NCBI GenBank assembly: GCA_002269645.1
Contig: NIVC01000790.1
Location: forward strand, 1-24,048
Source: Macrostomum lignano
Lineage: Eukaryota
Direction: 5' to 3'
Length of the DNA: 24,048 nucleotides
The notes beneath the pieces were generated by a model. It was not told where the DNA came from and searched no databases. It saw only the letters and a program-made list of their open reading frames with translations. Below, one piece after another: positions 1 through 24,048 of this stretch. The position numbers were made by a program, and so were the translations under genes. Within the stretch, counting starts at the first letter, position 1. The number at the start of each line of letters is the position of its first letter.

Positions 1-67
1 CTCCAGGCCCAGCCAGGCCTGCAGGCGGCTGCAGCGCTCGGCGTATTTAGCGAGTAGCTCGGAGAGC
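1..67 (-). CDS. Partial exon (runs off window start): spectrin repeat (R)LSELLAKYAERCSRLQAWLGLE
   Basis: Acceptor CCCAACGCAG| at 68-69; phase 2 matches the donor at 424 (AG|G = Arg); open frame. Not in the ORF track. Confidence 0.85.
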
Positions 68-423: not shown

Positions 424-982
424 CTGCTCAATGCGCTCCTCAGCGTCTCCGTGTCGCTATCCAGCTCGGCCAGTCCGGATTGAACCCTGTTCAGCGCCTC
501 GCGGCATCGTCCGGAGGCGCCACTTCCGCCTCCAGCATCTCCAGTCGCTGCACCGTCGGTGAGCTGCAGCATGAGCTCCCGGGACTCCGCCTCGCGCCAG
601 CTGATCTCCCCGGCCAGCCGGGCCAGGCCGCGAAGTCGCTCGGCCAGCCGGCGTCCGGCTTCCTCCGAGGCGGCCGAGTCCGCGGCGACGTCAGCGCGGA
701 GCTCGTCGAGGCGAGCCCGGCCGATGGGCAGCCAGTCGGACAGCCGCTGCACCCGCTGCAGCATCTGGTCCTCGGCCTGGCCGGCCCGGGCCCGGCGCTG
801 CGCCAGCTCGGCCAGGCGGGCCTCCAGCTCGCGCAGCTGCCGTTCTACGCCGGACAGCTTCGTGCGCAGGTCGAACTGCGTCGCAGGATCGTCGGCGGCG
901 GCTTCGCACAGTCGTCGGCAGAGGTCGCGCGCCTGCGACAGGTCCGACCGGAACGACGCCAGCTCCTCGTCTGTTGGCCGGC
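424..982 (-). CDS. Exon, 559 bp, spectrin repeats (RPTDEELASF...LRSALS)
   Basis: Acceptor CATCATCCGCAG| at 983-984, donor |GTTTGT at 423. Extends ORF 411..764 upstream without a stop; phase 1 to 2. Confidence 0.88.
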
Positions 983-1919: not shown

Positions 1920-2262
1920 CAGCTTCCCCGGCCTCATCCAGTCGATCAACCGCTGCGGGCAGCGCTTCGCCCAGCCGGCCCAGCAGGGCGTAGAAGTCCA
2001 GGGTCGGCTGGCGCAGCTGCTCCAGGGCGGCCGCTCGCTCAGCCAGTCGGCGCCGCAAGTCCTCCAGCGCGGCCAGCAGGTCGGCGAGGCCGGACCGCAC
2101 GCGGTTGACGGCCGCCGTCGCTGCCTCCGTCGCGGAATTTTTATCGTCATCGGCAGCCTGCGATGCCAGCAGTTCCAGCAGAGCTATCAGCGCCTCGCAG
2201 GTGGCTCGGAGTTGATCTGCTGCCGGCTGCTTCGAGTCCAGCTCGTCTAGGAGGAGGCTCAC
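1920..2262 (-). CDS. Exon, 343 bp, spectrin repeat (VSLLLDELDSK...DEAGEA)
   Basis: Acceptor CTCTCCCCGCGCGCAG| at 2263-2264, donor |GTGTGT at 1919; ORF 1900..2262; phase 0 to 1. Confidence 0.88.
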
Positions 2263-2463: not shown

Positions 2464-3059
2464 CTGCTGAGCCTGGGCGCTGGCCAGAGCAGGCGTGGTC
2501 ACCACGGGCCCCAGCACAGCCAGCATTCGCTCCTTCTGCGTGACCCAGTGCCGCAGGTTGTCGCACTGAGCTTCCCGGTCGGCCAGCAGCTCCACCAGCC
2601 GTCGGGCAGTCGTGAGTCGCGCCGCCACCCGGCCAATGAGTTCGGACAGTCGAGCAGCCAAACGGCTGGCCGACTCGCCGACGTGTCGAGCTCCGACCAC
2701 GCCGGCCGCTGGCCGATTTCGCTGCAGCTGCTCGGCCGAGGCCGTCACGCCGGCCACCAGCGGCTCAACGTCGGCGGCCAGGCTGCGCTGAAAGTCGGCC
2801 GCCAGACGGACACTTCGCTCCGCCTCCGGCTGGGTGTCGATGACCGAAGACGACGAACTGGAGGCGGCTTCGGCCTCCTTGGCTTCCAGAGCGGCCTGGG
2901 CGGCGGCGTAGGCGGCCCAGAAGCGCTGCAGCTGGTCGGCGGCGCTGTCGATGTCGGCGCTACGGCGGCACAGGGCGTCGCCAATTGAAGCGTAGCGGCC
3001 CTGAAGGTCGTCCAGTTCTTGAGCGATCTCGGACAGCTCTGCCAAGAGTGCGGGACCGG
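2464..3059 (-). CDS. Exon, 596 bp, spectrin repeats (GPALLAELSEIAQEL...AQAQQ)
   Basis: Acceptor TTTTAACCCAG| at 3060-3061, donor |GTTAGT at 2463; within ORF 2440..3111; phase 1 to 0. Confidence 0.9.
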
Positions 3060-3343: not shown

Positions 3344-3692
3344 TTGTCTCTTCTCTCCTCTCTCCCTCTCTCAGCTCTCCTCTCTTTCCCGCTTATCTCT
3401 CCTCTCTCCCCTCTTTCCCTCTTCTCTCTCCTCTCTCCTCTCTCCCCTCTCTCAGCTCTCCTCTCTTTCCCGCTTCTCTCTCCTCTCTCCTCTCTCCCCT
3501 CTCTCAGCTCTCCTCTCTTTCCCGCTTCTCTCTCCTCTCTCCTCTCTCCCCTCTCTCAGCTCTCCTCTCTTTCCCGCTTCTCTCTCCTCTCTCCTCCCCC
3601 TCTCTTCTCTCGCTCTCGTTTCTCCTCTTGTCTTCTTTCTTATCTCTTTTCTCTAATCTCTAATCTTCTATTTCCTCTCCTTTCCTCTCTCA
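3344..3692. repeat. Polypyrimidine/polypurine (CT-rich) tract with an internal 52-bp period
   Basis: Almost only C/T on the + strand; the CAGCTC marker recurs at 3372, 3453, 3505 and 3557 (spacings 81, 52, 52). Confidence 0.92.
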
Positions 3693-3822
3693 TCTGGCCC
3701 CTAGCCATAAGCTGGATTCTTCATCCGGCCCTTGGGATAAAAAGACCACAACGAGGAAATGAGCATGTGGTACAACATCTAGGAAACTACATGGTGCGTC
3801 ATTAGCTTAAAATTTCGGTTAC

Positions 3823-3927
3823 CATGCAACGAGGCCGTGTTGCCAACGCTGCTGCAGATCCCGCTGGACTCGGAGCTGGACACCGGGCTAAGAGGCGACC
3901 GCAGGAGCGGCGAATTCCTTGCCCAGC
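3823..3927 (-). CDS. Small 105-bp symmetric (phase 1-1) exon, Ser/Pro-rich (WARNSPLLRSPLSPVSSSESSGICSSVGNTASLH)
   Basis: GC-rich island in an AT-rich intron; acceptor GACCGCAG| at 3928-3929, donor CATG|GTAACC at 3822; open in the frame required by both neighbours. Missed by the ORF track. Confidence 0.8.
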
Positions 3928-4210
3928 CTGCGGTCGTCCAGCGTTATTGATATTTTAAAAAAATATATAATTTACAATGCATGTCGTTCCATCAAGGAAG
4001 CCAAAATACTACAAGAGCGAAGCTGATCGAATATTTCTATGAAAATATGACAACTACTGTATACCAGTGCGTCGGTGCGTGAGTTTCTGTCAGCTAGTCT
4101 TAATAATAACTAATGCAAATTTCTATCTGCAGCTAATAGTTTGAGTAATATATCATGCAAAACTGACTCGGCGATTAAAATTTAAATCCATCATTTTTAG
4201 AGGGGGGTGG

Positions 4211-4754: not shown

Positions 4755-5106
4755 GCGGCCGTTTCGGACTCATCGGGCTGGCGGAGCCAGCAGCTGCGGC
4801 AGCTCCGGCGCCGCTGCCGTTCAGAGCGACGTCGAAAGCCAGTCCAGCCACCATCAGGCGGTCCATGGCCGGCTGGAACTCCTCGAACTGTCCGGTGAAG
4901 TCGTCGGCTGTTCGACGCTGCGCCGTCAATTCGTCGGCGTCGAGCGCCACAGGCGGCAGGCCGCGCAGGCGGGCCTCGGCCCGGCCCAGCCAGTCGAGCG
5001 CCTCCCGCCTGGCCCGGTCGAACTCGTCAGCCCGCGATCGGCGCAGCTGGAGCTCCTCGGCGCGGGCCTCCATGCGCGAATTGAAATCTGTCCACAGCTG
5101 CTCCAC
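4755..5106 (-). CDS. Exon, 352 bp, spectrin repeat (VEQLWTDF...SPMSPKRP)
   Basis: Acceptor GCTAATTTAG| at 5107-5108, donor C|GTGAGT at 4754; ORF 4735..5106; phase 0 to 1. Confidence 0.9.
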
Positions 5107-5215: not shown

Positions 5216-5752
5216 CTCCTGCCAGGCGTCTCGCACGAACTCTCCGGCAGCTCCGGCCGATTCGGCGGTTGCCGCTCCCTCGGGCTGCTCCGCGGCCTCG
5301 CCGGCGGCGCTTGTCGCCATCCTCAATAGTTCCCTGGCCAGGGTCCGCACGGTGGCCAGGCCGCCCTCGGCCAGCTCCGCCCGCTGCCTGTCTAGTGAGG
5401 CCAGCCGTTCCGACCAGGCGGCGTCTGTCGCGGCGGCGGCCGCCGCGGTCGGCAACGGGGCGGCAAGCGCCGGCACCTGCTGGGCCAGCCAGGCTCGGGT
5501 CGGCCGGGCCGCCGACAGAAACTCCGACAGGCGGTCGCGCGCCGAATCGACGGCGTCTCGACGCTCCGCCAGCCGCCGGGCAACCTCGTCGAATTGACGA
5601 CGGCAGGCGTCAGCGCGCTCGCGCAGCTGCCCGGTGGCCGACGCCGAGGCTGGCGACGCGGCCGCCTCCGCCTCTGCCAGGCCGTCCTCGGCCTCCTGCA
5701 GCGAGGCCTGGCGGCACTGCAGCTCCGCCTCCAGCACTTTCACCTGCTGGGC
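5216..5752 (-). CDS. Exon, 537 bp, spectrin repeats (AQQVKVLEAEL...RDAWQE)
   Basis: Acceptor ATGCCGCAG| at 5753-5754 (two further in-frame CAGs 6 and 9 nt downstream are alternatives), donor GAG|GTTCGT at 5215; ORF 5207..5833; phase 0 to 0. Confidence 0.85.
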
Positions 5753-5970: not shown

Positions 5971-6207
5971 CTGCTCATCCAGCAGCTCGGGCCGCAGTCC
6001 CACCGGCCGCATGGCGTCCAGCTGACGGAGCGCCAGCGCCAGCCACTGCTGCAGTCCGGCGATGGCCTCCTGCAGGCCGGAGCAGTGCAGCAGCTGCCGC
6101 TGAAGGCTGGCGCCCAGGTCTGCGCACTCCTGCTTCAGCCGGTCGTGTCGGTTCAGAATGGCGTTCACTTGGTCCTCCGGTTCTGTCGCTGAGGCGGGCT
6201 GGCCGAC
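5971..6207 (-). CDS. Exon, 237 bp, spectrin repeat (VGQPASATEPEDQV...LLDEQ)
   Basis: Acceptor AACCCGCAG| at 6208-6209, donor CAG|GTGAGA at 5970; ORF 5899..6219; phase 0 to 0. Confidence 0.9.
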
Positions 6208-7043: not shown

Positions 7044-7748
7044 CTCATCGGCATTCTCGGCCAGCGCGTCGGCCAGAGCATCCAGAGCCTGTCGCAGCCG
7101 TTCAATCAGGCTGTCCAGCGAGAACAAATCCGCGCTGAAGCCGCGCACTCTCTGCGCCAGCGCGGCCAGCTCCGGCTCGCTGACCGGCCGCTGCTCGGCC
7201 AGCCTGGCCAGCTGAGACTCCAGCGCGCCGAGCTGCGAGTCGGCCTGCCGGCGCAAACCAACGAACTCGCGGGCGAGCTCGGCCGCGGCCTGGCGAGCTC
7301 TGAGCAGCTCCCGGCACCGCTCGGACAGCTCCGACTGTCGCTCCTGGACGGCGCGTACAGCCAGCCGAACCGACGCCTCGGATTCGTGAGCGGTGCCGAC
7401 AAATTTCGGCTCCTCCTCGCCGGACGACTCCTGAGAGGTGGCGGCGGCGGCGGCGGCGGCGGCGGACGCGAAGGCCTCCTGAGCGGACTCGAGCCCGCGG
7501 GCGCAGTTCACCAGGCGTTGGCCGGCCGCGGCTAGGGCTTTCATGTCCGGCTGGCGGGCCAGCAGCTCCGCTTCGCAAGCCTTCAAACCGTCGACAATGT
7601 CGGTGACGCTGGTCAACTTGGCGGCGTCGGCGTCGGAGTCGTCAGCGTCGGCGTCGGGATTGGCCGGGCGCCAGGCGGCCTCGGCCAGCTCGGAGAGACG
7701 CAGGCCGACCGCCTCCTGCCAGGACTGCGCAGTCTGCAGCCGGTCGGT
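7044..7748 (-). CDS. Exon, 705 bp, spectrin repeats with poly-Ala loop (TDRLQTAQSW...ENADE)
   Basis: Acceptor GAATCCGCAG| at 7749-7750, donor GAG|GTTTGC at 7043; ORF 7005..7850; phase 0 to 0. Confidence 0.85.
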
Positions 7749-7991: not shown

Positions 7992-8213
7992 CTGATTCTC
8001 CAGCGCGTCATGCAGAGCCGTGAGCAGTCTCAGTCTGGCGTCTGACTCGCGTCTGAGCTGCTCCATCAGGGCTCGGCTGACGGTAGCGGCAGCTGTCAGT
8101 CTGTCGCGTTGATCTTCGCTAACAGCGTCGGAATATTTGTGCAGCAGGCTCTCGGTCTGGTAGCACAGCGTCAGCAACGGCTGCTGGCGAGACAGCAACT
8201 CGTTATTGATGTC
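7992..8213 (-). CDS. Exon, 222 bp (DINNELLSRQQPLL...ALENQ)
   Basis: Acceptor TAATCTCTGCAG| at 8214-8215, donor CAG|GTTCGT at 7991; extends ORF 7914..8198; phase 0 to 0. Confidence 0.88.
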
Positions 8214-9561: not shown

Positions 9562-9708
9562 CTGGTGCTCCTCGAGCATCTGGGCCACCGGCGGCTCCTC
9601 CAGGGTGGCCGATGGGAAGGCCAACAGGCGAGCCTGCAGGCTGCGCAGCTTCGCCAACTCGCGCTCCAAATCAGTCAACAAGTCGTCGGCGTACTTCTTG
9701 GCGTCAAC
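9562..9708 (-). CDS. Exon, 147 bp (VDAKKYADDLLTDLEREL...LEEHQ), first helical exon after the giant exon
   Basis: Acceptor CTGTCAATTAG| at 9709-9710, donor CAG|GTGCGT at 9561; extends ORF 9484..9681; phase 0 to 0. Confidence 0.85.
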
Positions 9709-10315
9709 CTAATTGACAGGAATTCAGATTGACAGGTGTGACAGGGTATAGAAGCGGTGATGGAGAGTGGTGATGGCGCAACAGCGGGAGTGCCGCAATT
9801 CGCAGCCGCAACAGAAAAGCAGCGGCAAGAATGATCCGATACAATGGATACTCGTAGCAGTTCAGAGCGAAATCAACAAACTAATCATCACTAAACTACT
9901 AAGCTAAACTACGGAATCAAAGGCACACGCTCGTACGGCTATCTGGCTTTAAAGAGGTACGCTCGTAGCAGCCTAATCAAGATAATAAAAAAGAAAATAG
10001 GAGAAGAGTAAACACATCTCAGTACGGATCAGACAACACAAGCACAGATACTTACCCGTCAGAGAGGAATTATTAATACATTTGAAAACAACACAGAAAT
10101 AGCTAAAAAGCCGGAAATGCCAATGAGAAAGCCAGAGTGGAAGTCGAGTTTGGCCAATCGAACTCAGCAAGCGCGGGCAGCAATAGAGGGTTCGCTAAAT
10201 AATTAAAGCACCATGCCGAACCACAAAAAGCACAACAAATTCACGAAAGCTAAAAGCTACAAAAGCCATAAGAAAAGCGACAGCACTTAGTAATTACGAC
10301 ACCAAAGAATCTTAC

Positions 10316-13300
10316 CGAACTCTCCAGTGACACGTATTGCAGAATATCAGAATACGAGCACTCAACGATTTGACCAAATCCGGACACCAACCCCGAGCTC
10401 AGAGTGTTACCAGAGAAGGATGAAGTCAGGGAGCGGGAGTCCAAAGGTGAACGTAGAAAACTTTGAGAAGTATTGCCTACATTGCTTGGATCAAAAGAGC
10501 TCGAACCTCCGATCGCCTCAGCTGAAGATATACTTAGGGAGGAGGGGCGTCTTACAACTGCACCAGATTGCAGGCCTAGTGGACTGGATTCCAATCGCAA
10601 CTCCTCAGCCTCCTTAAAAGCTTCCTGTAAATTCTTATCACACTGCTCAGCCGTTCCGTTGCTTTCCTGGTCTGCGCGCAGCTTGAGCTCTTTGGCTTCG
10701 GGCTTCAGCTGCTCTTTTTGCTCCTCTGACAGACGTGATTCGGCGGCCGGTTCCTGTTTTGCAGTTAATCTCTCAGTCTTTGTGTTCTCTGGTACTGGTT
10801 GATTTGGTTCCTGCAATTGTACAGCCAATACGCGGGTTTCAGATTCGACAACCACTGTCGTTTCCGAACCCTGAGGGCCTGCGCTGAGTTTCTCTTTACT
10901 CTCAGTGGCGGTATCGGTTGTGACCTTCGACGGCACGGATGTCGTATCAGCATCCTCACTAAGCCTATGCTCTGCATTGTCAATTTTAGGCTGTTCCCGA
11001 TCGACTAATTCCGTTGGCTTTGAGGATTCTAAGCCTAATGCCTCAGAAGGCTGAGCAGCCTCTTCTAGCTTTGGCGCTGCAGCGATTTTCTGGTCCGCGC
11101 GCAGCTCAAGCTCTTTGGTTTCGCTCTTCAGCTGCTCTTGTCGCTCTTCTGACGGACGCGACTCGGCGGCCTCCACCTCTGTAAGAGACACCTCGTCCTT
11201 GACCTCAGCCTGCCCAGCAGCCCCTTCTGGCTTCGATACTGCACCGCTTTCCTGGTCTGCGCGCAGCTCGAGCTCTTTGGCTTCGGGCTTCAGCTGCTCT
11301 TGTTGCTCTTCTGACGGATGCGACCCGGCGGCCTCCGCCTCTGTTGGAGCCACATCATCCTTGACCTCAGCCTGCTTAGCAGCCTCTTCTGGCTTCAGTA
11401 CTGCACCGCTTTCCTGGTCTGCGCGCAGCTCGAGCTCTTTGGCTTCGGGCTTCAGCTGCTCTTGTCGCTCTTCTGACGGACGCGACTCGGCGGCTTGCGC
11501 GTCTGTTGGAGCCACCTCATCCTTGACCTCAGCCTGCTTAGCAGCCCCTTCTGGCTTCGATACTGCACCGCTTTCCTGGTCTGCGCGCAGCTCGAGCTCT
11601 TTGGCTTCGGGCTTCAGCTGCTCTTGTCGCTCTTCTGACGGACGCGACTCGGCGGCTTGCGCGTCTGTTGGAGCCACCTCATCCTTGACCTCAGTCTTTT
11701 CGGCAGCCTCTTCAGGCTTCAGAGCTTCTCGACTCACCCGATCTGCACGCAGCTCGAGCTCTTTGTCTTCAGGCTTCAGCTGCTCTTGTCGCTCTTCTGA
11801 CGGACGCGACTCGGCGGCTTGCGCGTCTGTTGGAGCCACCTCATCCTTGACCTCAGTCTTTTCGGCAGCCTCTTCAGGCTTCAGAGCTTCTCGACTCTCC
11901 CGATCTGCACGCAGCTCGAGCTCTTTGGCTTCGGGCTTCAGCTGCTCTTGTTGCTTTTCCGACGGACGCGACTCGGCGGCTTGCGCGTCTGTTGGAGCCA
12001 CCTCGTCCCTGACCTCAGCCTGCTTAACAGCCTCTTCAGGCTTTGGTGCTTCTCGGCTCTCCTGATCTGCTTGCAGCTCGAGCTCTTTGGCTTCGGGCTT
12101 CAGCTGCTCTTGTCGCTCTTCTGACGGATGCGACCCGGCGGCCTCCGCCTCTGTTGGAGCCACATCATCCTTGACCTCAGCCTGCTTAGCAGCCTCTTCT
12201 GGCTTCAGTACTGCACCGCTTTCCTGGTCTGCGCGCAGCTCGAGCTCTTTGGCTTCGGGCTTCAGTTGCTCTTGTCGCTCTTCTGACGGGCGCGACTCGG
12301 CGGCCTCCGCCTCTGTTGGAGCCACATCATCCTTGACCTCAGCCTGCTTAGCAGCCTCTTCTGGCTTCGGTACTGCACCGCTTTCCTGGTCTGCGCGCAG
12401 CTCGAGCTCTTTGGCTTCGGGCTTCAGCTGCTCTTGTCGCTCTTCTGACGGATGCGACCCGGCGGCCTCCGCCTCTGTTGGAGCCACATCATCCTTGACC
12501 TCAGCCTGCTTAGCAGCCTCTTCTGGCTTCAGTACTGCACCGCTTTCCTGGTCTGCGCGCAGCTCGAGCTTTTTGTCTTCAGGCTTCAGCTGCTCTTGTT
12601 GCTCCTCTGACAGACGTGATTCGGCGGCCGGTTCCTGTTTTGCAGTTAATCCCTCAGTCTTTGTGTTCTCTGGTACTGGGTGACTTGGTTCCTGCAATTG
12701 TACAGCCAATACGCGGGTTTCAGATTCGACAACCACTGTCGTTTCCGAACCCTGAGGGCCTGCGCTGAGTTTCTCTTTACTCTCAGTGGCGGTATCGGTT
12801 GTGACCTTCGACGGCACGGATGTCGTATCAGCATCCTCACTAAGCCTATGCTCTGCATTGTCAATTTTAGGCTGTTCCCGATCGACTAATTCCGTTGGCT
12901 TTGAGGATTCAAAGCCTAATGCCTCAGAAGGCTGAGCAGCCTCTTCTAGCTTTGGCGCTGCAGCGATTTTCTGGTCCGCGCGCAGCTCAAGCTCTTTGGC
13001 TTCGGGCTTTAGCTGCTCTTGTTGCTTTTCCGACGGACGCGACTCGGCGGCCTCCGCCTCTGTTGGAGCCACATCATCCTTGACCTCAGCCTGCTTAGCA
13101 GCCTCTTCTGGCTTCGATACTGCACCGCTTTCCTGGTCTGCGCGCAGCTCGAGCTCTTTGGCTTCGGGCTTCAGCTGCTCTTGTCGCTCTTCTGACGGAC
13201 GCGACTCGGCGGCTTGCGCGTCTGTTGGAGCCACCTCATCCTTGACCTCAGTCTTTTCGGCAGCCTCTTCAGGCTTCAGAGCTTCTCGACTCTCCCGATC

Positions 13301-16300
13301 TGCACGCAGCTCGAGCTCTTTGTCTTCAGGCTTCAGCTGCTCTTGTCGCTCTTCTGACGGAAGCGACTCGGCGGCTTGCGCGTCTGTTGGAGCCACCTCG
13401 TCCCTGACCTCAGCCTGCTTAACAGCCTCTTCAGGCTCTGGTGCTTCTCGGCTCTCCTGATCTGCTTGCAGCTCGAGCTCTTTGGCTTCGGGCTTCAGCT
13501 GCTCTTGTCGCTCTTCTGACGGATGCGACCCGGCGGCCTCCGCCTCTGTTGGAGCCACATCATCCTTGACCTCAGCCTGCTTAGCAGCCTCTTCTGGCTT
13601 CGGTACTGCACCGCTTTCCTGGTCTGCGCGCAGCTCGAGCTCTTTGGCTTCGGGCTTCAGCTGCTCTTGTTGCTCCTCTGACAGACGTGATTCGGCGGCC
13701 GGTTCCTGTTTTGCAGTTAATCCCTCAGTCTTTGTGTTCTCTGGTACTGCTTGACTTGGTTCCTGCAATTGTACAGCCAATACGCGGGTTTCAGATTCGA
13801 CAACCACTGTCGTTTCCGAACCCTGAGGGCCTGCGCTGAGTTTCTCTTTACTCTCAGTGGCGGTATCGGTTGTGACCTTCGACGGCACGGATGTCGTATC
13901 AGCATCCTCACTAAGCCTATGCTCTGCATTGTCAATTTTAGGCTGTTCCCGATCGACTAATTCCGTTGGCTTTGAGGATTCAAAGCCTAATGCCTCAGAA
14001 GGCTGAGCAGCCTCTTCTAGCTTTGGCGCTGCAGCGATTTTCTGGTCCGCGCGCAGCTCAAGCTCTTTGGCTTCGGGCTTCAGCTGCTCTTGTCGCTCTT
14101 CTGACGGACGCGACTCGGCGGCTTGCGCGTCTGTTGGAGCCACCTCATCCTTGACCTCAGCCTGCTTAGCAGCCCCTTCTGGCTTCGATACTGCACCGCT
14201 TTCCTGGTCTGCGCGCAGCTCGAGCTCTTTGGCTTCGGGCTTCAGCTGCTCTTGTCGCTCTTCTGACGGACGCGACTCGGCGGCTTGCGCGTCTGTTGGA
14301 GCCACCTCATCCTTGACCTCAGCCTGCTTAGCAGCCCCTTCTGGCTTCGATACTGCACCGCTTTCCTGGTCTGCGCGCAGCTCGAGCTCTTTGGCTTCGG
14401 GCTTCAGCTGCTCTTGTCGCTCTTCTGACGGACGCGACTCGGCGGCTTGCGCGTCTGTTGGAGCCACCTCATCCTTGACCTCAGTCTTTTCGGCAGCCTC
14501 TTCAGGCTTCAGAGCTTCTCGACTCTCCCGATCTGCACGCAGCTCGAGCTCTTTGGCTTCGGGCTTCAGCTGCTCTTGTTGCTTTTCCGACGGACGCGAC
14601 TCGGCGGCTTGCGCGTCTGTTGGAGCCACCTCGTCCCTGACCTCAGCCTGCTTAACAGCCTCTTCAGGCTTTGGTGCTTCTCGGCTCTCCTGATCTGCTT
14701 GCAGCTCGAGCTCTTTGGCTTCGGGCTTCAGCTGCTCTTGTTGCTCTTCTGACGGATGCGACCCGGCGGCCTCCGCCTCTGTTGGAGCCACATCATCCTT
14801 GACCTCAGCCTGCTTAGCAGCCTCTTCTGGCTTCAGAACTGCACCGCTTTCCTGGTCTGCGCGCAGCTCGAGCTCTTTGGCTTCGGGCTTCAGCTGCTCT
14901 TGTCGCTCTTCTGACGGGCGCGACTCGGCGGCCTCCGCCTCTGTTGGAGCCACATCATCCTTGACCTCAGCCTGCTTAGCAGCCTCTTCTGGCTTCGGTA
15001 CTGCACCGCTTTCCTGGTCTGCGCGCAGCTCGAGCTCTTTGGCTTCGGGCTTCAGCTGCTCTTGTCGCTCTTCTGACGGACGCGACTCGGCGGCTTGCGC
15101 GTCTGTTGGAGCCACCTCATCCTTGACCTCAGCCTGCTTAGCAGCCTCTTCTGGCTTCGGTACTGCACCGCTTTCCTGGTCTGCGCGCAGCTCGAGCTTT
15201 TTGTCTTCAGGCTTCAGCTGCTCTTGTTGCTCCTCTGACAGACGTGATTCGGCGGCCGGTTCCTGTTTTGCAGTTAATCCCTCAGTCTTTGTGTTCTCTG
15301 GTACTGGGTGACTTGGTTCCTGCAATTGTACAGCCAATACGCGGGTTTCAGATTCGACAACCACTGTCGTTTCCGAACCCTGAGGGCCTGCGCTGAGTTT
15401 CTCTTTACTCTCAGTGGCGGTATCGGTTGTGACCTTCGACGGCACGGATGTCGTATCAGCATCCTCACTAAGCCTATGCTCTGCATTGTCAATTTTAGGC
15501 TGTTCCCGATCGACTAATTCCGTTGGCTTTGAGGATTCAAAGCCTAATGCCTCAGAAGGCTGAGCAGCCTCTTCTAGCTTTGGCGCTGCAGCGATTTTCT
15601 GGTCCGCGCGCAGCTCAAGCTCTTTGGCTTCGGGCTTTAGCTGCTCTTGTTGCTTTTCCGACGGACGCGACTCGGCGGCTTGCGCGTCTGTTGGAGCCAC
15701 CTCGTCCCTGACCTCAGTCTTTTCGGCAGCCTCTTCAGGCTTCGGAGCTTCTCGACTCTCCCGATCTGCACGCAGCTCGAGCTCTTTGGCTTCGGGCTTC
15801 AGCTGCTCTTGTCGCTTTTCTGACGGGCGCGACTCGGCGGCTTGCGCGTCTGTTGGAGCCACCTCATCCTTGACCTCAGCCTGCTTAGCAGCCCCTTCTG
15901 GCTTCGATACTGCACCGCTTTCCTGGTCTGCGCGCAGCTCGAGCTCTTTGGCTTCGGGCTTCAGCTGCTCTTGTCGCTCTTCTGACAGACGCGACTCGGC
16001 GGCTTGCGCGTCTGTTGGAGCCACGTCATCCTTGACCTCAGTCCTTTCGGCAGCCTCTTCAGGCTTCGGAGCTTCTCGGCTCTCCTGATCTGCTTGCAGC
16101 TCAAGCTCTTTGGCTTCGGGCTTCAGCTGCTCTTGTTGCTTTTCCGACGGACGCGACTCGGCGGCTTGCGCGTCTGTTGGAGCCACCTCGTCCCTGACCT
16201 CAGTCTTTTCGGCAGCCTCTTCAGGCTTCGGAGCTTCTCGACTCTCCCGATCTGCACGCAGCTCGAGCTCTTTGGCTTCGGGCTTCAGCTGCTCTTGTCG

Positions 16301-19300
16301 CTCTTCTGACGGGCGCGACTCGGCGGCTTGCGCGTCTGTTGGAGCCACCTCATCCTTGACCTCAGTCTTTTCGGCAGCCTCTTCAGGCTTCAGAGCTTCT
16401 CGACTCTCCCGATCTGCACGCAGCTCGAGCTCTTTGGCTTCGGGCTTCAGCTGCTCTTGTTGCTTTTCCGACGGACGCGACTCGGCGGCTTGCGCGTCTG
16501 TTGGAGCCACCTCGTCCCTGACCTCAGTCTTCTCGGCAGCCTCTTCAGGCTTCGGAGCTTCTCGACTCTCCCGATCTGCACGCAGCTCGAGCTCTTTGGC
16601 TTCGGGCTTCAGCTGCTCTTGTCGCTCTTCTGACGGGCGCGACTCGGCTGCCTCCGCCTCTGTTGGAGCCACCACGTTCTTTACTTCAGCCTGCTTAGCA
16701 GCCCCTTCTGGCTTCGATACTGCACCGCTTTCCTGGTCTGCGCGCAGCTCGAGCTCTTTGGCTTCGGGCTTCAGCTGCTCTTGTCGCTCTTCTGACAGAC
16801 GCGACTCGGAAGCTTGCGCGTCTGTTGGAGCCACGTCTTCCTTGACCTCAGTCCTTTCGGCAGCCTCTTCAGGCTTCGGAGCTTCTCGGCTCTCCTGATC
16901 TGCTTGCAGCTCAAGCTCTTTGGCTTCGGGCTCCAGCTGCTCTTGTTGCTTTTCCGACGGACGCGACTCGGCGGCTTGCGCGTCTGTTGGAGCCACCTCG
17001 TCCCTGACCTCAGTCTTTTCGGCAGCCTCTTCAGGCTTCGGAGCTTCTCGACTCTCCCGATCTGCACGCAGCTCGAGCTCTTTGGCTTCGGGCTTCAGCT
17101 GCTCTTGTCGCTCTTCTGACGGGCGCGACCCGGCGGCTTGCGCGTCTGTTGGAGCCACCTCATCCTTGACCTCAGCCTGCTTAGCAGCCCCTTCTGGCTT
17201 CGATACTGCACCGCTTTCCTGGTCTGCGCGCAGCTCGAGCTCTTTGGCTTCGGGCTTCAGCTGCTCTTGTCGCTCTTCTGACGGGCGCGACTCGGCTGCC
17301 TCCGCCTCTGTTGGAGCCACCACGTTCTTTACTTCAGCCTGCTTAGCAGCCCCTTCTGGCTTCGATACTGCACCGCTTTCCTGGTCTGCGCGCAGCTCGA
17401 GCTCTTTGGCTTCGGGCTTCAGCTGCTCTTGTCGCTCTTCTGACAGACGCGACTCGGCGGCTTGCGCGTCTGTTGGAGCCACCTCATCCTTGACCTCAGT
17501 CTTTTCGGCAGCCTCTTCAGGCTTCAGAGCTTCTCGACTCTCCCGATCTGCACGCAGCTCGAGCTCTTTGGCTTCGGGCTTCAGCTGCTCTTGTTGCTTT
17601 TCCGACGGACGCGACTCGGCGGCTTGCGCGTCTGTTGGAGCCACCTCATCCTTGACCTCAGTCTTTTCGGCAGCCTCTTCAGGCTTCGGAGCTTCTCGGC
17701 TCTCCTGATCTGCTTGCAGCTCAAGCTCTTTGGCTTCGGGCTTCAGCTGCTCTTGTTGCTTTTCCGACGGACGCGACTCGGCGGCTTGCGCGTCTGTTGG
17801 AGCCACCTCGTCCCTGACCTCAGTCTTCTCGGCAGCCTCTTCAGGCTTCGGAGCTTCTCGACTCTCCCGATCTGCACGCAGCTCGAGCTCTTTGGCTTCG
17901 GGCTTCAGCTGCTCTTGTCGCTCTTCTGACGGGCGCGACTCGGCGGCTTGCGCGTCTGTTGGAGCCACCTCATCCTTGACCTCAGCCTGCTTAGCAGCCC
18001 CTTCTGGCTTCGATACTGCACCGCTTTCCTGGTCTGCGCGCAGCTCGAGCTCTTTGGCTTCGGGCTTCAGCTGCTCTTGTCGCTCTTCTGACGGACGCGA
18101 CTCGGCGGCTTGCGCGTCTGTTGGAGCCACCTCATCCTTGACCTCAGTCTTTTCGGCAGCCTCTTCAGGCTTCAGAGCTTCTCGACTCTCCCGATCTGCA
18201 CGCAGCTCGAGCTCTTTGGCTTCGGGCTTTAGCTGCTCTTGTTGCTTTTCCGACGGACGCGACTCGGCGGCTTGCGCGTCTGTTGGAGCCACCTCGTCCC
18301 TGACCTCAGCCTGCTTAACAGCCTCTTCAGGCTTTGGTGCTTCTCGCTCTCCTGATCTGCTTGCAGCTCGAGCTCTTTGGCTTCGGGCTTCAGCTGCTCC
18401 TGTTGCTCTTCTGACGGATGCGACCCGGCGGCCTCCGCCTCTGTTGGAGCCACATCATCCTTGACCTCAGCCTGCTTAGCAGCCTCTTCTGGCTTCAGTA
18501 CTGCACCGCTTTCCTGGTCTGCTCGCAGCTCGAGCTCTTTGGCTTCGGGCTTCAGCTGCTCTTGTCGCTCTTCTGACGGGCGCGACTCGGCGGCCTCCGC
18601 CTCTGTTGGAGCCACCTCATCCTTAACTTCAGTCCTTTCGGCAGCCTCTACAGGCTTCAGAGCTTCTCGGCTCTCCTGATCTGCTTGCAGCTCAAGCTCT
18701 TTGGCTTCGGGCTTTAGCTGCTCTTGTTGCTTTTCCGACGGACGCGACTCGGCGGCTTGCGCGTCTGTTGGAGCCACCTCGTCCCTGACCTCAGTCTTCT
18801 CGGCAGCCTCTTCAGCCTTCGGAGCTTCTCGACTCTCCCGATCTGCACGCAGCTCGAGCTCTTTGGCTTCGGGCTTCAGCTGCTCTTCTCGCTCTTCTGA
18901 CGGGCGCGACTCGGCTGCCTCCGCCTCTGTTGGAGCCACCACGTTCTTTACTTCAGCCTGCTTAGCAGCCCCTTCTGGCTTCGATACTGCACCGCTTTCC
19001 TGGTCTGCGCGCAGCTCGAGCTCTTTGGCTTCGGGCTTCAGCTGCTCTTGTCGCTCTTCTGACGGACGCGACTCGGCGGCTTGCGCGTCTGTTGGAGCCA
19101 CCTCATCCTTGACCTCAGTCTTTTCGGCAGCCTCTTCAGGCTTCAGAGCTTCTCGACTCTCCCGATCTGCACGCAGCTCGAGCTCTTTGGCTTCGGGCTT
19201 CAGCTGCTCTTGTTGCTTTTCCGACGGACGCGACTCGGCGGCTTGCGCGTCTGTTGGAGCCACCTCGTCCCTGACCTCAGTCTTCTCGGCAGCCTCTTCA

Positions 19301-22300
19301 GGCTTCGGAGCTTCTCGACTCTCCCGATCTGCACGCAGCTCGAGCTCTTTGGCTTCGGGCTTCAGCTGCTCTTGTCGCTCTTCTGACGGGCGCGACTCGG
19401 CTGCCTCCGCCTCTGTTGGAGCCACCACGTTCTTTACTTCAGCCTGCTTAGCAGCCCCTTCTGGCTTCGATATTGCACCGCTTTCCTGGTCTGCGCGCAG
19501 CTCGAGCTCTTTGGCTTCGGGCTTCAGCTGCTCTTGTCGCTCTTCTGACGGACGCGACTCGGCGGCTTGCGCGTCTGTTGGAGCCACCTCATCCTTGACC
19601 TCAGTCTTTTCGGCAGCCTCTTCAGGCTTCTGAGCTTCTCGACTCTCCCGATCTGCACGCAGCTCGAGCTCTTTGGCTTCGGGCTTCAGCTGCTCTTGTT
19701 GCTTTTCCGACGGACGCGACTCGGCGGCTTGCGCGTCTGTTGGAGCCACCTCGTCCCTGACCTCAGCCTGCTTAACAGCCTCTTCTGGCTTCAGTACTGC
19801 ACCGCTTTCCTGGTCTGCTCGCAGCTCGAGCTCTTTGGCTTCGGGCTTCAGCTGCTCTTGTTGCTCTTCTGACGGATGCGACCCGGCGGCCTCCGCCTCT
19901 GTTGGAGCCACATCATCCTTGACCTCAGCCTGCTTAGCAGCCTCTTCTGGCTTCAGTACTGCACCGCTTTCCTGGTCTGCTCGCAGCTCGAGCTCTTTGG
20001 CTTCGGGCTTCAGCTGCTCTTGTCGCTCTTCTGACGGGCGCGACTCGGCGGCCTCCGCCTCTGTTGGAGCCACCTCATCCTTAACTTCAGTCCTTTCGGC
20101 AGCCTCTACAGGCTTCAGAGCTTCTCGGCTCTCCTGATCTGCTTGCAGCTCAAGCTCTTTGGCTTCGGGCTTTAGCTGCTCTTGTTGCTTTTCCGACGGA
20201 CGCGACTCGGCGGCTTGCGCGTCTGTTGGAGCCACCTCGTCCCTGACCTCAGTCTTCTCGGCAGCCTCTTCAGGCTTCGGAGCTTCTCGACTCTCCGATC
20301 TGCACGCAGCTCGAGCTCTTTGGCTTCGGGCTTCAGCTGCTCTTGTCGCTCTTCTGACGGGCGCGACTCGGCTGCCTCCGCCTCTGTTGGAGCCACCACG
20401 TTCTTTACTTCAGCCTGCTTAGCAGCCCCTTCTGGCTTCGATACTGCACCGCTTTCCTGGTCTGCGCGCAGCTCGAGCTTTTTGGCTTCGGGCTTCAGCT
20501 GCTCTTGTCGCTCTTCTGACGGACGCGACTCGGCGGCTTGCGCGTCTGTTGGAGCCACCTCATCCTTGACCTCAGTCTTTCCGGCAGCCTCTTCAGGCTT
20601 CAGAGCTTCTCGACTCTCCCGATCTGCACGCAGCTCGAGCTCTTTGGCTTCGGGCTTCAGTTGCTCTTGTCGCTCTTCTGACGGACGCGACTCGGCGGCT
20701 TGCGCGTCTGTTGGAGCCACCTCATCCTTGACCTCAGTCTTTTCGGCAGCCTCTTCAGGCTTCAGAGCTTCTCGACTCTCCCGATCTGCACGCAGCTCGA
20801 GCTCTTTGGCTTCGGGCTTCAGCTGCTCTTGTCGCTCTTCTGACGGGCGCGACTCGGCGGCCTCCGCCTCTGTTGGAGCCACATCATCCTTGACCTCAGC
20901 CTGCTTAGCAGCCTCTTCTGGCTTCAGTACTGCACCGCTTTCCTGGTCTGCGCGCAGCTCGAGCTCTTTGGCTTCGGGCTTCAGCTGCTCATGTCGCTCT
21001 TCTGACGGGCGCGACTCGGCGGCCTCCGCCTCTGTTGGAGCCACCTCATCCTTGACCTCAGCCTGCTTAGCAGCCTCTTCTGGCTTCGGTACTGCACCGC
21101 TTTCCTGGTCTGCGCGCAGCTCGAGCTTTTTGTCTTCGGGCTTCAGCTGCTCTTGTTGCTCCTCTGACAGATGTGATTCGGCGGCCGGTTCCTGTTTTGC
21201 AGTTAATCCCTCAGTCTTTGTGTTCTCTGGTACTGGGTGACTTGGTTCCTGCAATTGTACAGCCAATACGCGGGTTTCAGATTCGACAACCACTGTCGTT
21301 TCCGAACCCTGAGGGCCTGCGCTGAGTTTCTCTTTACTCTCAGTGGCGGTATCGGTTGTGACCTTCGACGGCACGGATGTCGTATCAGCATCTTCACTAA
21401 GCCTATGCTCTGCATTGTCAATTTTAGGCTGTTCCCGATCGACTAATTCCGTTGGCTTTGAGGATTCAAAGCCTAATGCCTCAGAAGGCTGAGCAGCCTC
21501 TTCTAGCTTTGGCGCTGCAGCGATTTTCTGGTCCGCGCGCAGCTCAAGCTCTTTGGCTTCGGGCTTCAGCTGCTCTTGTCGCTCTTCTGACGGACGCGAC
21601 TCGGCGGCTTGCGCGTCTGTTGGAGCCACCTCGTCCCTGACCTCAGTCTTTTCGGCAGCCTCTTCAGGCTTCAGAGCTTCTTGACTCTCCCGATCTGCAC
21701 GCAGCTCGAGCTCTTTGGCTTCGGGCTTCAGCTGCTCTTGTTGCTCTTCTGACGGATGCGACCCGGCGGCCTCCGCCTTTGTTGGAGCCACCTCGTCCTT
21801 TACTTCAGCCTGCTTAGCAGCCTCTTCTGGCTTCAGTACTGCACCGCTTTCCTGGTCTGCGCGCAGCTCGAGCTCTTTGGCTTCGGGCTTCAGCTGCTCT
21901 TGTCGCTCTTCTGACGGACGCGACTCGGCGGCTTGCGCGTCTGTTGGAGCCACCTCATCCTTGTCCTCAGTCCTTTCGGCAGCCTCTTCAGGCTTCAGAG
22001 CTTCTCGACTCTCCCGATCTGCACGCAGCTCGAGCTCTTTGGCTTCAGGCTTCAGCTGCTCTTGTCGCTCTTCTGACGGACGCGACTCGGCGGCTTGCGC
22101 GTCTGTTGGAGCCACCTCGTCCCTGACCTCAGCCTGCTTAACAGCCTCTTCAGGCTTTGGTGCTTCTCGGCTCTCCTGATCTGCTTGCAGCTCGAGCTCT
22201 TTGGCTTCGGGCTTCAGCTGCTCTTGTTGCTCTTCTGACGGATGCGACCCGGCGGCCTCCGCCTCTGTTGGAGCCACATCATCCTTGACCTCAGCCTGCT

Positions 22301-24048
22301 TAGCAGCCTCTTCTGGCTTCGGTACTGCACCGCTTTCCTGGTCTGCGCGCAGCTTGAGCTCTTTGGCTTCGGGCTTCAGCTGCTCTTTTTGCTCCTCTGA
22401 CAGACGTGATTCGGCGGCCGGTTCCTGTTTTGCAGTTAATCTCTCAGTCTTTGTGTTCTCTGGTACTGGTTGATTTGGTTCCTGCAATTGTACAGCCAAT
22501 ACGCGGGTTTCAGATTCGACAACCACTGTCGTTTCCGAACCCTGAGGGCCTGCGCTGAGTTTCTCTTTACTCTCAGTGGCGGTATCGGTTGTGACCTTCG
22601 ACGGCACGGATGTCGTATCAGCATCCTCACTAAGCCTATGCTCTGCATTGTCAATTTTAGGCTGTTCCCGATCGACTAATTCCGTTGGCGTTGGCTTTGA
22701 GGATTCAAAGCCTAATGCCTCAGAAGGCTGAGCAGCCTCTTCTAGCTTTGGCGCTGCAGCGATTTTCTGGTCCGCGCGCAGCTCAAGCTCTTTGGCCTCG
22801 GGCTTCAGCTGCTCTTGTCGCTCTTCTGACGGACGCGACTCGGCGGCTTGCGCGTCTGTTGGAGCCACCTCGTCCCTGACCTCAGTCTTTTCGGCAGCCT
22901 CTTCAGGCTTCGGAGCTTCTCGACTCTCCTGATCTGCTTGCAGCTCAAGCTCTTTGGCTTCGGGCTTTAGCTGTCTTGTTGCTTTTCCGACGGACGCGAC
23001 TCGGCGGCTTGCGCGTCTGTTGGAGCCACCTCGTCCCTGACCTCAGCCTGCTTAACAGCCTCTTCAGGCTTTGGTGCTTCTCGACTCTCCCGATCTGCAC
23101 GCAGCTCGAGCTCTTTGGCTTCGGGCTTCAGCTGCTCTTGTCGCTCTGCTGACGGCGCGCGACTCGGCGGCCTCCGCCTCTGTCGGAGCCACCTCGTACT
23201 TTACTTCAGCCTGCTTAGCAGCCCCTTCTGGCTTCGATACTGCACCGCTTTCCTGGTCTGCGCGCAGCTCGAGTCTTTGGCTTCGGCTTCAGCTGCTCTT
23301 GTCGCTCTTCTGACGGACGCGACTCGGCGGCTTGCGCATCTGTTGGAGCCACCTCATCCTTGACCTCAGTCTTTTCGGCAGCCTCTTCAGGCTTCAGAGC
23401 TTCTCGACACTCCCGATCTGCACGCAGCTCGAGCTCTTTGTTTCAGGCTTCAGCTGCTCTTGTCGCTCTTCTGACGGACGCGACTCGGCGGCTTGCGCGT
23501 CTGTTGGAGCCACCTCGTCCCTGACCTCAGCCTGCTTAACAGCCTCTTCAGGCTTTGGTGCTTCTCGGCTCTCCTGATCTGCTTGCAGCTCGAGCTCTTT
23601 GGCTTCGGGCTTCAGCTGCTCTTGTCGCTCTTCTGACGGGCGTGACTCGGCGGCCTCCGCCTCTGTTGGAGCCACATCATCCTTGACCTCAGCCTGCTTA
23701 GCAGCCTCTTCTGGCTTCAGTACTGCACCGCTTTCCTGGTCTGCGCACAGCTCGAGCTCTTTGGCTTCGGGCTTCAGCTGCTCTTGTCGCTCTTCTGACG
23801 GCGCAACTCGGCGGCTTGCGCGGTCTGTTGGAGCCACCTCATCCTTGTCCTCAGTCCTTTCGGCAGCCTCTTCAGGCTTCAGAGCTTCTCGACTCTCCCG
23901 ATCTGCACGCAGCTCGAGCTCTTTTGGCTTCAGGCTTCAGCTGCTCTTGTCGCTCTTCTGATGGGCGCGACTCGGCGGCCTCCGCCTCTGTTGAGCCACC
24001 TCGTCCTTTACTTCAGCCTGCTTAGCAGCCCTTCTGGCTTCGATACTG
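10316..24048 (-). CDS. Giant exon (at least 13,733 bp, 5' end outside window): tandem 54-aa acidic repeats, 141-aa spacers and a Ser-rich unique tail; interrupted by single-base indels
   Basis: ORFs 10250..18292, 18229..20235 and 20172..22868 are one frame offset by 1-bp deletions. Strong donor TCG|GTAAGA at 10315 in phase 0 matches the exon at 9708. No intron-like sequence lies within 10316-24048. Confidence 0.8.
10667..24048 (-). repeat. Coding tandem array: about 67 x 162-bp units plus 6 x 423-bp spacer blocks
   Basis: Unit APTDAQAAESRPSEERQEQLKPEAKELELRADQESGAVSKPEGAAKQAEVKDEV is 54 aa. Spacers lie at 10667-11089, 12548-12970, 13619-14041, 15176-15598, 21105-21527 and 22338-22766. The intervals are multiples of 162 bp (less 2 bp in the interval containing two deletions). 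Confidence 0.97.

Follow-up and report, generated by a model that had tools for sequence, protein, structure and literature searches.

What is a giant tandem-repeat array doing beside the exons of a cytoskeletal cross-linker, and does it belong to the protein at all? The question is raised by contig NIVC01000790.1 of the flatworm Macrostomum lignano (assembly GCA_002269645.1, Mlig_3_7). The whole contig of 24,048 bp was analysed and is referred to here as the window; its gene lies on the minus strand. Actin, microtubules and, in the case of vertebrate plakins, intermediate filaments are cross-linked chiefly by spectraplakins, whose giant isoforms containing plakin repeats are to our knowledge poorly understood. 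We propose that the window is the middle part of a M. lignano spectraplakin gene (MACF1/dystonin/Shot/VAB-10 family), in which an array of 54-residue units makes up the 3' portion of a very large coding exon, here E0, located between plakin repeats and the spectrin-repeat rod. Taken as a whole, this explanation is in our judgement probable. The sole gene called on the contig is the rod gene; its product, PAA76821.1 ('hypothetical protein BOX15_Mlig027975g6, partial', here P0001), is the annotated product of the window itself and came up when the spliced downstream exons were used as query in a word-index search of proteins. Scans of the window for tRNAs and Rfam families gave no matches. The element in question is the following:

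10316..24048, minus strand: E0, a giant coding exon of which the contig contains only the 3' portion, with about 74 units of 54 residues, six 87-residue insertions and a unique tail

The identity of the gene is carried by the exons downstream of E0. Ten exons with GT-AG borders throughout join in frame into a spliced rod of 1,255 residues, or 1,248 with the annotated acceptor of exon 7, and not the 1,290 that an earlier note on this DNA had counted. The model P0001 of NCBI matches these exons except at the E7 acceptor and at its start, a Met at 9580 that lies 43 residues into E1.

9562..9708, minus strand: rod exon E1, 49 residues, entered and left in phase 0; the start Met of the NCBI model is internal to it
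7992..8213, minus strand: rod exon E2
7044..7748, minus strand: rod exon E3
5971..6207, minus strand: rod exon E4
5216..5752, minus strand: rod exon E5
4755..5106, minus strand: rod exon E6, ending in phase 1
2464..3059, minus strand: rod exon E7; the annotated acceptor lies 21 nucleotides (nt) downstream, with the exon start at 3038
1920..2262, minus strand: rod exon E8
424..982, minus strand: rod exon E9
1..67, minus strand: rod exon E10, cut by the contig end

With the rod piece P0003 as query, HMMER was run exhaustively against 1.84 billion representative proteins and returned 95 matches, the long ones carrying CH, SH3_10, EF-hand, GAS2/GAR and SxIP features (the GAR motif in 16 long matches, SxIP in many). 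The PPPX tail of a KASH domain was found at none of the checked matches longer than 900 residues. The homologue P0008 has the domain content of a textbook spectraplakin (CH x2, Spectrin_4, Spectrin_3, SH3_10, Spectrin x19, EF-hand and GAS2). Rod residues 9-702 and 725-1102 align to its residues 1282-1918 and 1977-2346, right after its plakin domain, and E1-E2 align to P0008 1283-1390 as one unbroken stretch. Similarly, rod residues 48-727 and 729-1104 align to 3584-4204 and 4241-4596 of P0009, after the last plectin-like motif of that protein at 3500. The order of the alignments is identical in P0008, P0009, P0011, P0014, P0015 and P0050; in P0050 and P0014 the rod-aligning region comes after Pfam Plectin repeats (412 and 251 bits), and EF-hand/GAR domains are present in P0008, P0009, P0011, P0015 and others. 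Because the alignments follow the order of the first rod repeats behind a plakin domain or plectin repeats, the ten downstream exons are the beginning of a spectraplakin rod. The spectraplakin-like rod suspected in the earlier note is corroborated by both the 95 matches and the in-order alignments. At the level of domain profiles, Pfam Spectrin scored 30.0 bits for P0001 and 60.9 bits for P0002, a UniRef model of the same locus (cut-off 29.9). Single rod exons gave sub-threshold Pfam matches only, to Spectrin and Spectrin_Anc-1 (E 5e-4), and searches of PDB sequences with the rod, P0002 and P0005 returned noise only. When compared with the window rod, P0002 shows one mismatch and four skipped segments, and it carries the rod 909 residues past the window, ending still inside it.

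A different family was first suggested by the Pfam matches of single exons and by the names given in UniRef: the gene could encode a nesprin of the SYNE/ANC-1/MSP-300 type, i.e. a KASH protein, with the giant exon comparable to the repeats of ANC-1 or MSP-300. UniRef indeed names P0002, P0003 and P0102 'KASH domain-containing protein', and the weak match to Spectrin_Anc-1 is accompanied by one to Spectrin_SYNE1 in P0002 (33.2 bits, cut-off 35). However, Spectrin_SYNE1 scores 121 bits on the true spectraplakin P0008, so that it is not specific to nesprins, and Pfam finds no KASH in P0002 at E up to 0.01. P0102, which was added by a cluster look-up and likewise ends inside the rod, stops at the same point as P0002 with no PPPX tail. 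The rod is collinear with those of spectraplakins, plectin repeats precede the array at other loci, and the checked long matches combine 16 GAR motifs with the lack of PPPX tails noted above. ANC-1 of C. elegans and MSP-300 of Drosophila do resemble the M. lignano gene as giant spectrin-family proteins with a long tandem repeat region, to which the 'KASH' name at the same locus may be added, but they differ in that no KASH was detected here, the homologues carry GAR, and M. lignano models have plectin repeats upstream. The nesprin identity, which the earlier note had named as the outcome that would overturn its reading, was rejected after the exhaustive search and the in-order alignments, though not finally, as the true C-terminus of the gene lies beyond the models examined, and we regard it as very improbable. 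The automatic UniRef names are judged unreliable for this gene family, because its pieces (P0002-P0006, P0101 and P0102) carry the names 'KASH', 'UCH', 'Glutaredoxin' and 'DUF4200'; with Pfam at E up to 0.01, neither UCH nor Glutaredoxin was found in P0004-P0006.

If the downstream exons open a spectraplakin rod, which place in the gene does E0 occupy? In Drosophila Shot, the plakin-repeat exon measures 10,497 nt, holds 33 plakin repeats and is alternatively spliced in, with isoforms of up to 8,846 residues (PMC2173965). Since the part of the homologues that matches the rod begins right behind their plakin domain or plectin repeats, E0 would sit in the slot of this plakin-repeat exon of Shot, MACF1b and BPAG1b, between plakin domain and rod. 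The other flank of the array is provided by gene models from other loci. A word-index query made of units, insertion, tail and E1-E2 matched three M. lignano models, including P0005 and P0006, which begin with Pfam Plectin repeats (50.5 and 57.7 bits, cut-off 20.5), continue with about 700 residues rich in Ser, Glu and Asp, and reach the first 54-residue units (...HHEVSPTEAEAAESRPSEERQEQLNPEAKELELRADKESREAPKPEEAVKQAEVRDEVAPTDAQAAESR) at their end. The residues that precede the first unit in these two models (TVTYSETLVLAVQLK) show homology to the insertion block of the window at its 3' edge (VVVESETRVLAVQLQ), with 63% identity over 95 residues. Because P0005 and P0006 run from plectin repeats into the units, the array is predicted to be added to the plakin repeats, downstream of them, and not to replace them. 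With plectin repeats on one side and the first rod repeats on the other, the architecture would be that of Shot-PH, MACF1b and BPAG1b. The earlier note had placed an unrelated array in this homologous slot, and the rod alignments sustain the slot itself; the Plectin repeats found upstream of the units in P0005 and P0006 speak against an array that stands in for the plakin repeats. The array is indeed unrelated to plectin repeats, as had been assumed: the Plectin repeat profile (PF00681) gave no match to units and insertion with Pfam at E up to 1, and no Pfam family matches the 54-residue units.

The likeness to Shot, MACF1b and BPAG1b concerns a very large exon between plakin domain and spectrin-repeat rod, whereas the content differs, the Shot exon being made of its plakin repeats separated by gaps and the M. 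lignano exon of an acidic array of 54-residue units covering at least 13.7 kb. As far as the word-index search can detect, M. lignano is the only source of proteins with this unit. It is probable that, in the M. lignano lineage, an exon or exon group gained an array downstream of its plectin repeats, that this array came to comprise at least 74 units of 54 residues interrupted six times by an 87-residue block, and that E0 would be spliced from 10316 to 9708 and onward into the spectrin repeats that open the rod. While the plakin-repeat exon of spectraplakins is known, the proposed lengthening of it by at least 13.7 kb of acidic tandem array, specific to this lineage, is new here, and none of the papers searched mentions both 'spectraplakin' and 'Macrostomum'. 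A chimeric word-index query (N-terminus of P0006 joined to the C-terminus of P0002), aimed at pieces with CH/plakin and EF/GAR domains, returned only known pieces and P0101, and P0005 has no DNA on record. As a separate observation, at least two diverged copies exist both of the rod (P0002 versus P0102) and of the plectin-to-array region (P0005 versus P0006), which fits the recent polyploidy of M. lignano; PMC10733133 describes the species as a recent polyploid that is difficult to assemble.

The array extends on the minus strand from 24048 to about 10700 with a period of 162 nt. Tandem Repeats Finder (TRF) reported 162-nt arrays at 11050-15257, 15609-21185, 21538-22418 and 22727-24042, that of 15609-21185 with 34.4 copies, 87% matches and 0% indels. 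Seventy repeat anchors stand in exact 162-nt register, the exceptions being six spacings of 423 or 429 nt and a few of 161 or 484 nt; the tandem array of at least 13.7 kb described in the earlier note is confirmed by these anchors and by TRF. The minus-strand translation of the unit is VAPTDAQAAESRPSEERQEQLKPEAKELELRADQESGAVSKPEGAAKQAEVKDE, and each wide spacing holds an in-frame non-repeat block, KIAAAPKLEE...TAKQEPAAESRLSEEQ, of net 87 residues. These blocks divide the array as follows:

22379..22808, minus strand: interval of insertion 1 (KIAAAPKLEE...TAKQEPAAESRLSEEQ), about 87 residues recurring in frame, from an anchor spacing of 429 nt
21146..21569, minus strand: interval of insertion 2, from an anchor spacing of 423 nt
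15640..21146, minus strand: largest unbroken block, about 35 units, from TRF, anchors and self-comparison
15217..15640, minus strand: interval of insertion 3, from translation and anchor spacing
13660..14083, minus strand: interval of insertion 4, from translation and anchor spacing
12589..13012, minus strand: interval of insertion 5, from translation and anchor spacing
10708..11131, minus strand: interval of insertion 6, whose 3' edge is homologous to the sequence entering the array in P0005

A higher-order period of three units (486 nt) is present in 15564-21186, where identity is 91% at an offset of three units and 87.5% at an offset of one, and on account of these identities the units are not young copies. 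They differ by 9-13% in DNA, with about 0.2 synonymous differences per site (pS), and the best long self-match of the array is 94% over 2.3 kb. The expression 'recently expanded', used in the earlier note, consequently holds in a relative sense alone.

Tandem repeats of another kind occupy the introns. Six of the ten, 9561-8214, 7043-6208, 5970-5753, 2463-2263, 1919-983 and 423-68, consist of minisatellite for 53-96% of their length, with units of 31, 32, 10, 16/32, 24 and 16 nt, respectively, and a seventh, 4754-3060, contains 17% of a TCTCCTC-type repeat. Intron 8 is composed for 96% of a 24-nt repeat that begins directly at the donor.

Does the array code for protein? A long open frame alone is weak evidence, for no stop will appear in an array if its unit is stop-free and has a length divisible by three; as the open frame is uninformative at such a period, the substitution pattern was tested. 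Among 59 clean units, none contains a stop (0/59), and variation at codon positions 1/2/3 amounts to 176/209/403. The pooled ratio of non-synonymous to synonymous differences between units (pN/pS) is 0.38 in frame, versus 1.08 and 0.96 in the shifted frames. The six insertions and the tail are all open in the same frame as the units. The low ratio in one frame only, the excess of variation at third positions and the open insertions and tail are good evidence that the array evolved under constraint at the protein level.

It may be objected that the array is non-coding or no longer coding, being an intronic satellite or a skipped, decaying exon in which the frameshifts are real. The array shows at least eight frame changes as assembled, the NCBI annotation leaves the region out, the neighbouring introns are rich in minisatellites, and the openness of the frame follows automatically from the unit, as said above. 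Yet a ratio of 0.38 confined to one frame, with third positions the most variable, and a frame common to six insertions and the tail are not what this would predict; the minisatellites of the introns repeat every 10-32 nt only, and at other loci there are gene models that pass from plectin repeats into the array. The inspected frameshifts, moreover, are isolated 1-nt deletions of the kind left in a consensus of PacBio continuous long reads (CLR). We consider a non-coding array unlikely and retain the coding exon.

The frame breaks deserve closer attention, since the open frame of 'at least 4,570 codons' reported in the earlier note does not exist as such: the array is split among three frames by 1-nt deletions. 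Read on the minus strand, the sequence is free of stops over 18454-10253 (2,734 codons), 20409-18232 (726) and 23042-20175 (956), in another frame each time, and the longest clean frame in the array has 2,677 codons. The repeat peptide changes frame near 23993, 23923, 23440, 23280, 23150, 22973, 20296 and 18346. Three of these breaks were inspected, and each proved to be a 1-nt deletion in a unit otherwise near-identical to another unit.

22973, minus strand: frameshifting 1-nt deletion, GAGCAG to GA-CAG, a probable assembly error
20296, minus strand: frameshifting 1-nt deletion in a GGG run (GGG to GG)
18346, minus strand: frameshifting 1-nt deletion, CC to C
22975..24048, minus strand: contig end with five more frame switches and about 10 gaps relative to other stretches of the array

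The gaps, about 10 in the alignment to other array stretches, lie in the final 1.3 kb of the contig. Mlig_3_7 is a Canu 1.4 assembly of PacBio CLR reads, to which Pilon polishing with short reads was applied (PMC5730564). Because the deletions are isolated, 1 nt long and denser at the contig end, and resemble an incompletely polished CLR consensus, the frame breaks are probably uncorrected single-base deletions of this assembly. Short reads would map poorly inside such an array and would hardly be uniquely placeable there.

The same assembly raises a doubt about size, as distinct from identity: the length and copy number of the array could be an artefact, inflated or collapsed. The contig is only 24 kb long and terminates inside the array, the density of errors climbs toward its end, and M. 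lignano is, as mentioned above, a recent polyploid that is difficult to assemble (PMC10733133). Against this, the units are non-identical (typically 87-91%), and even the best long self-match stays at the 94% over 2.3 kb given above; such divergence is sufficient for long reads to place the copies and argues against a trivially duplicated mis-assembly. The ordered three-unit period and the distinct sizes of the blocks between insertions speak in the same direction. An artefact of copy number is, in our view, possible without being probable. The figure of about 74 units is the count as assembled and, as the contig ends within the array, a lower bound on the true array.

At its 3' end, the coding exon leaves the repeats and closes with a sequence of its own, followed by the intron that separates it from the rod.

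10316..10660, minus strand: unique Ser-rich E0 tail of 115 residues (NGTAEQCDKN...ILQYVSLESS)
9709..10315, minus strand: intron 0 (GTAAGA...TTAG), 607 nt

The search for homologues of the tail gave none. E0 ends with TCG|gtaaga after 10316 in phase 0, and E1 begins at 9708 behind caattag, also in phase 0; the phase-0 GTAAGA donor compatible in frame with the first rod exon, as proposed in the earlier note, is found again in this pair. Homologues align to E1 from its residue 9, from which it follows that the coding sequence must extend upstream of the annotated start Met. From phase and consensus, E0 most likely splices from the phase-0 donor at 10316 to the phase-0 acceptor at 9708.

The frame of E0 closes at the stop 10253-10251, 63 nt (21 codons) beyond the GTAAGA donor, and this proximity invites another view of the exon. 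The array exon could be terminal, in an isoform comparable to VAB-10A or BPAG1e and read through to this stop, with the rod present only in isoforms that skip E0; C. elegans VAB-10A and BPAG1e do end with plakin repeats (PMC2173965). The homologous exon of Drosophila is nevertheless internal (PMC2173965), the donor is a good GTAAGA whose phase matches E1, and the search for AATAAA or ATTAAA in intron 0 found no poly(A) signal, which weakens the idea of a terminal exon. We hold such a terminal exon to be quite improbable and keep E0 as an internal exon joined to the rod.

What kind of protein would the array provide? The units contain 23.5% E, 17.3% A, 9.2% K, 8% Q and 7.9% P, are without aromatic residues, Cys or Ile, and have a net charge of about -7 each. 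A single-sequence AlphaFold2 model of four units reached a predicted local distance difference test (pLDDT) of 62 and a predicted template modelling score (pTM) of 0.19, and shows in each unit a single helix, about 22 residues long (around SEERQEQLKPEAKELELRADQES), with low-confidence coil over about 30 more. Judging from this composition and model, the product would most likely be a strongly acidic, proline-punctuated flexible chain of at least 4,500 residues without globular fold, with one short helix per unit and flexible linkers between. Plakin repeats bind intermediate filaments in other plakins. Within an isoform of very great length, the array may serve as an extended, flexible spacer, or as an entropic spring, that sets the plakin-repeat region apart from the rod linking actin and microtubules. 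That a spectraplakin isoform of well over 10,000 residues employs its array of at least 4,500 residues as a PEVK-like entropic spring or long-reach tether from plakin repeats to rod is, for the moment, a tentative and rather doubtful proposition.

Comparisons may nonetheless be drawn at the level of function. The PEVK region of titin and the giant exons of ankyrins are long, of low complexity, rich in P and E and devoid of a stable fold, and they occur in large cytoskeletal proteins; PEVK is also repetitive. The M. lignano array shares with them the long, unfolded, P- and E-rich insert, as a functional analogy only. It differs in having no sequence relationship to either and in its unit of 54 residues, rich in Ala and Gln with the net charge of about -7. 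Closer to the gene family, P0009, a GAR-bearing spectraplakin of 7,424 residues, contains a PEVK-like insert rich in T, E, P and K (about 1650-1850) inside its plectin-motif region, which suggests that the slot tolerates disordered inserts; this insert is of about 200 residues and is not a regular tandem array.

Several points weigh against the explanation as a whole. No CH, plakin, EF-hand or GAR domain was seen for this gene itself, which extends past both contig ends. That plectin repeats lead into the array is known from other loci (paralogues or homeologues, or the older ML2 assembly) and not from this contig, which ends inside the array. UniRef labels the same-locus model P0002 as a KASH protein, a domain that Pfam does not detect in it. 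The junction between 10316 and 9708 was drawn from phase and consensus, and a matching donor is estimated to occur at random in about 1 of 10 cases. The frame breaks, at least eight as assembled, would also be compatible with a decaying exon with real frameshifts, and the public annotation omits the 13.7-kb array at 10316-24048. The minisatellite-rich introns indicate that tandem repeats arise easily in this gene. Finally, the role of spacer or spring is suggested by composition and by a low-confidence model from a single sequence.

If expressed, the product would be the longest spectraplakin isoform described, and the plakin-repeat slot would be able to house a spacer of tunable length. Exon-specific RNA interference would then be possible in a regenerating flatworm with working transgenesis (PMC5730564). 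At the level of annotation, the public protein begins at an arbitrary internal Met and 13.7 kb of the public assembly stand unannotated; giant repeat exons are lost where short-read polishing and transcript-guided annotation meet tandem arrays.

Minor observations concern the rod. P0002 and P0102 skip 41 residues over the E5/E6 junction (rod residues 609-649), and P0002, P0003 and P0102 skip the last 18-27 residues of E7 (rod residues 906/915-932). These skipped segments, like the choice between the E7 acceptors at 3059 and 3038, correspond either to alternative splice sites or to artefacts of the gene models. The best match outside M. lignano, P0007 (4,076 residues, from an ENA contig), aligns 15 times with the same part of the rod, in two interleaved sets of matches that each recur about every 770-790 residues, and it looks like a tandem super-repeat of spectrin repeats.

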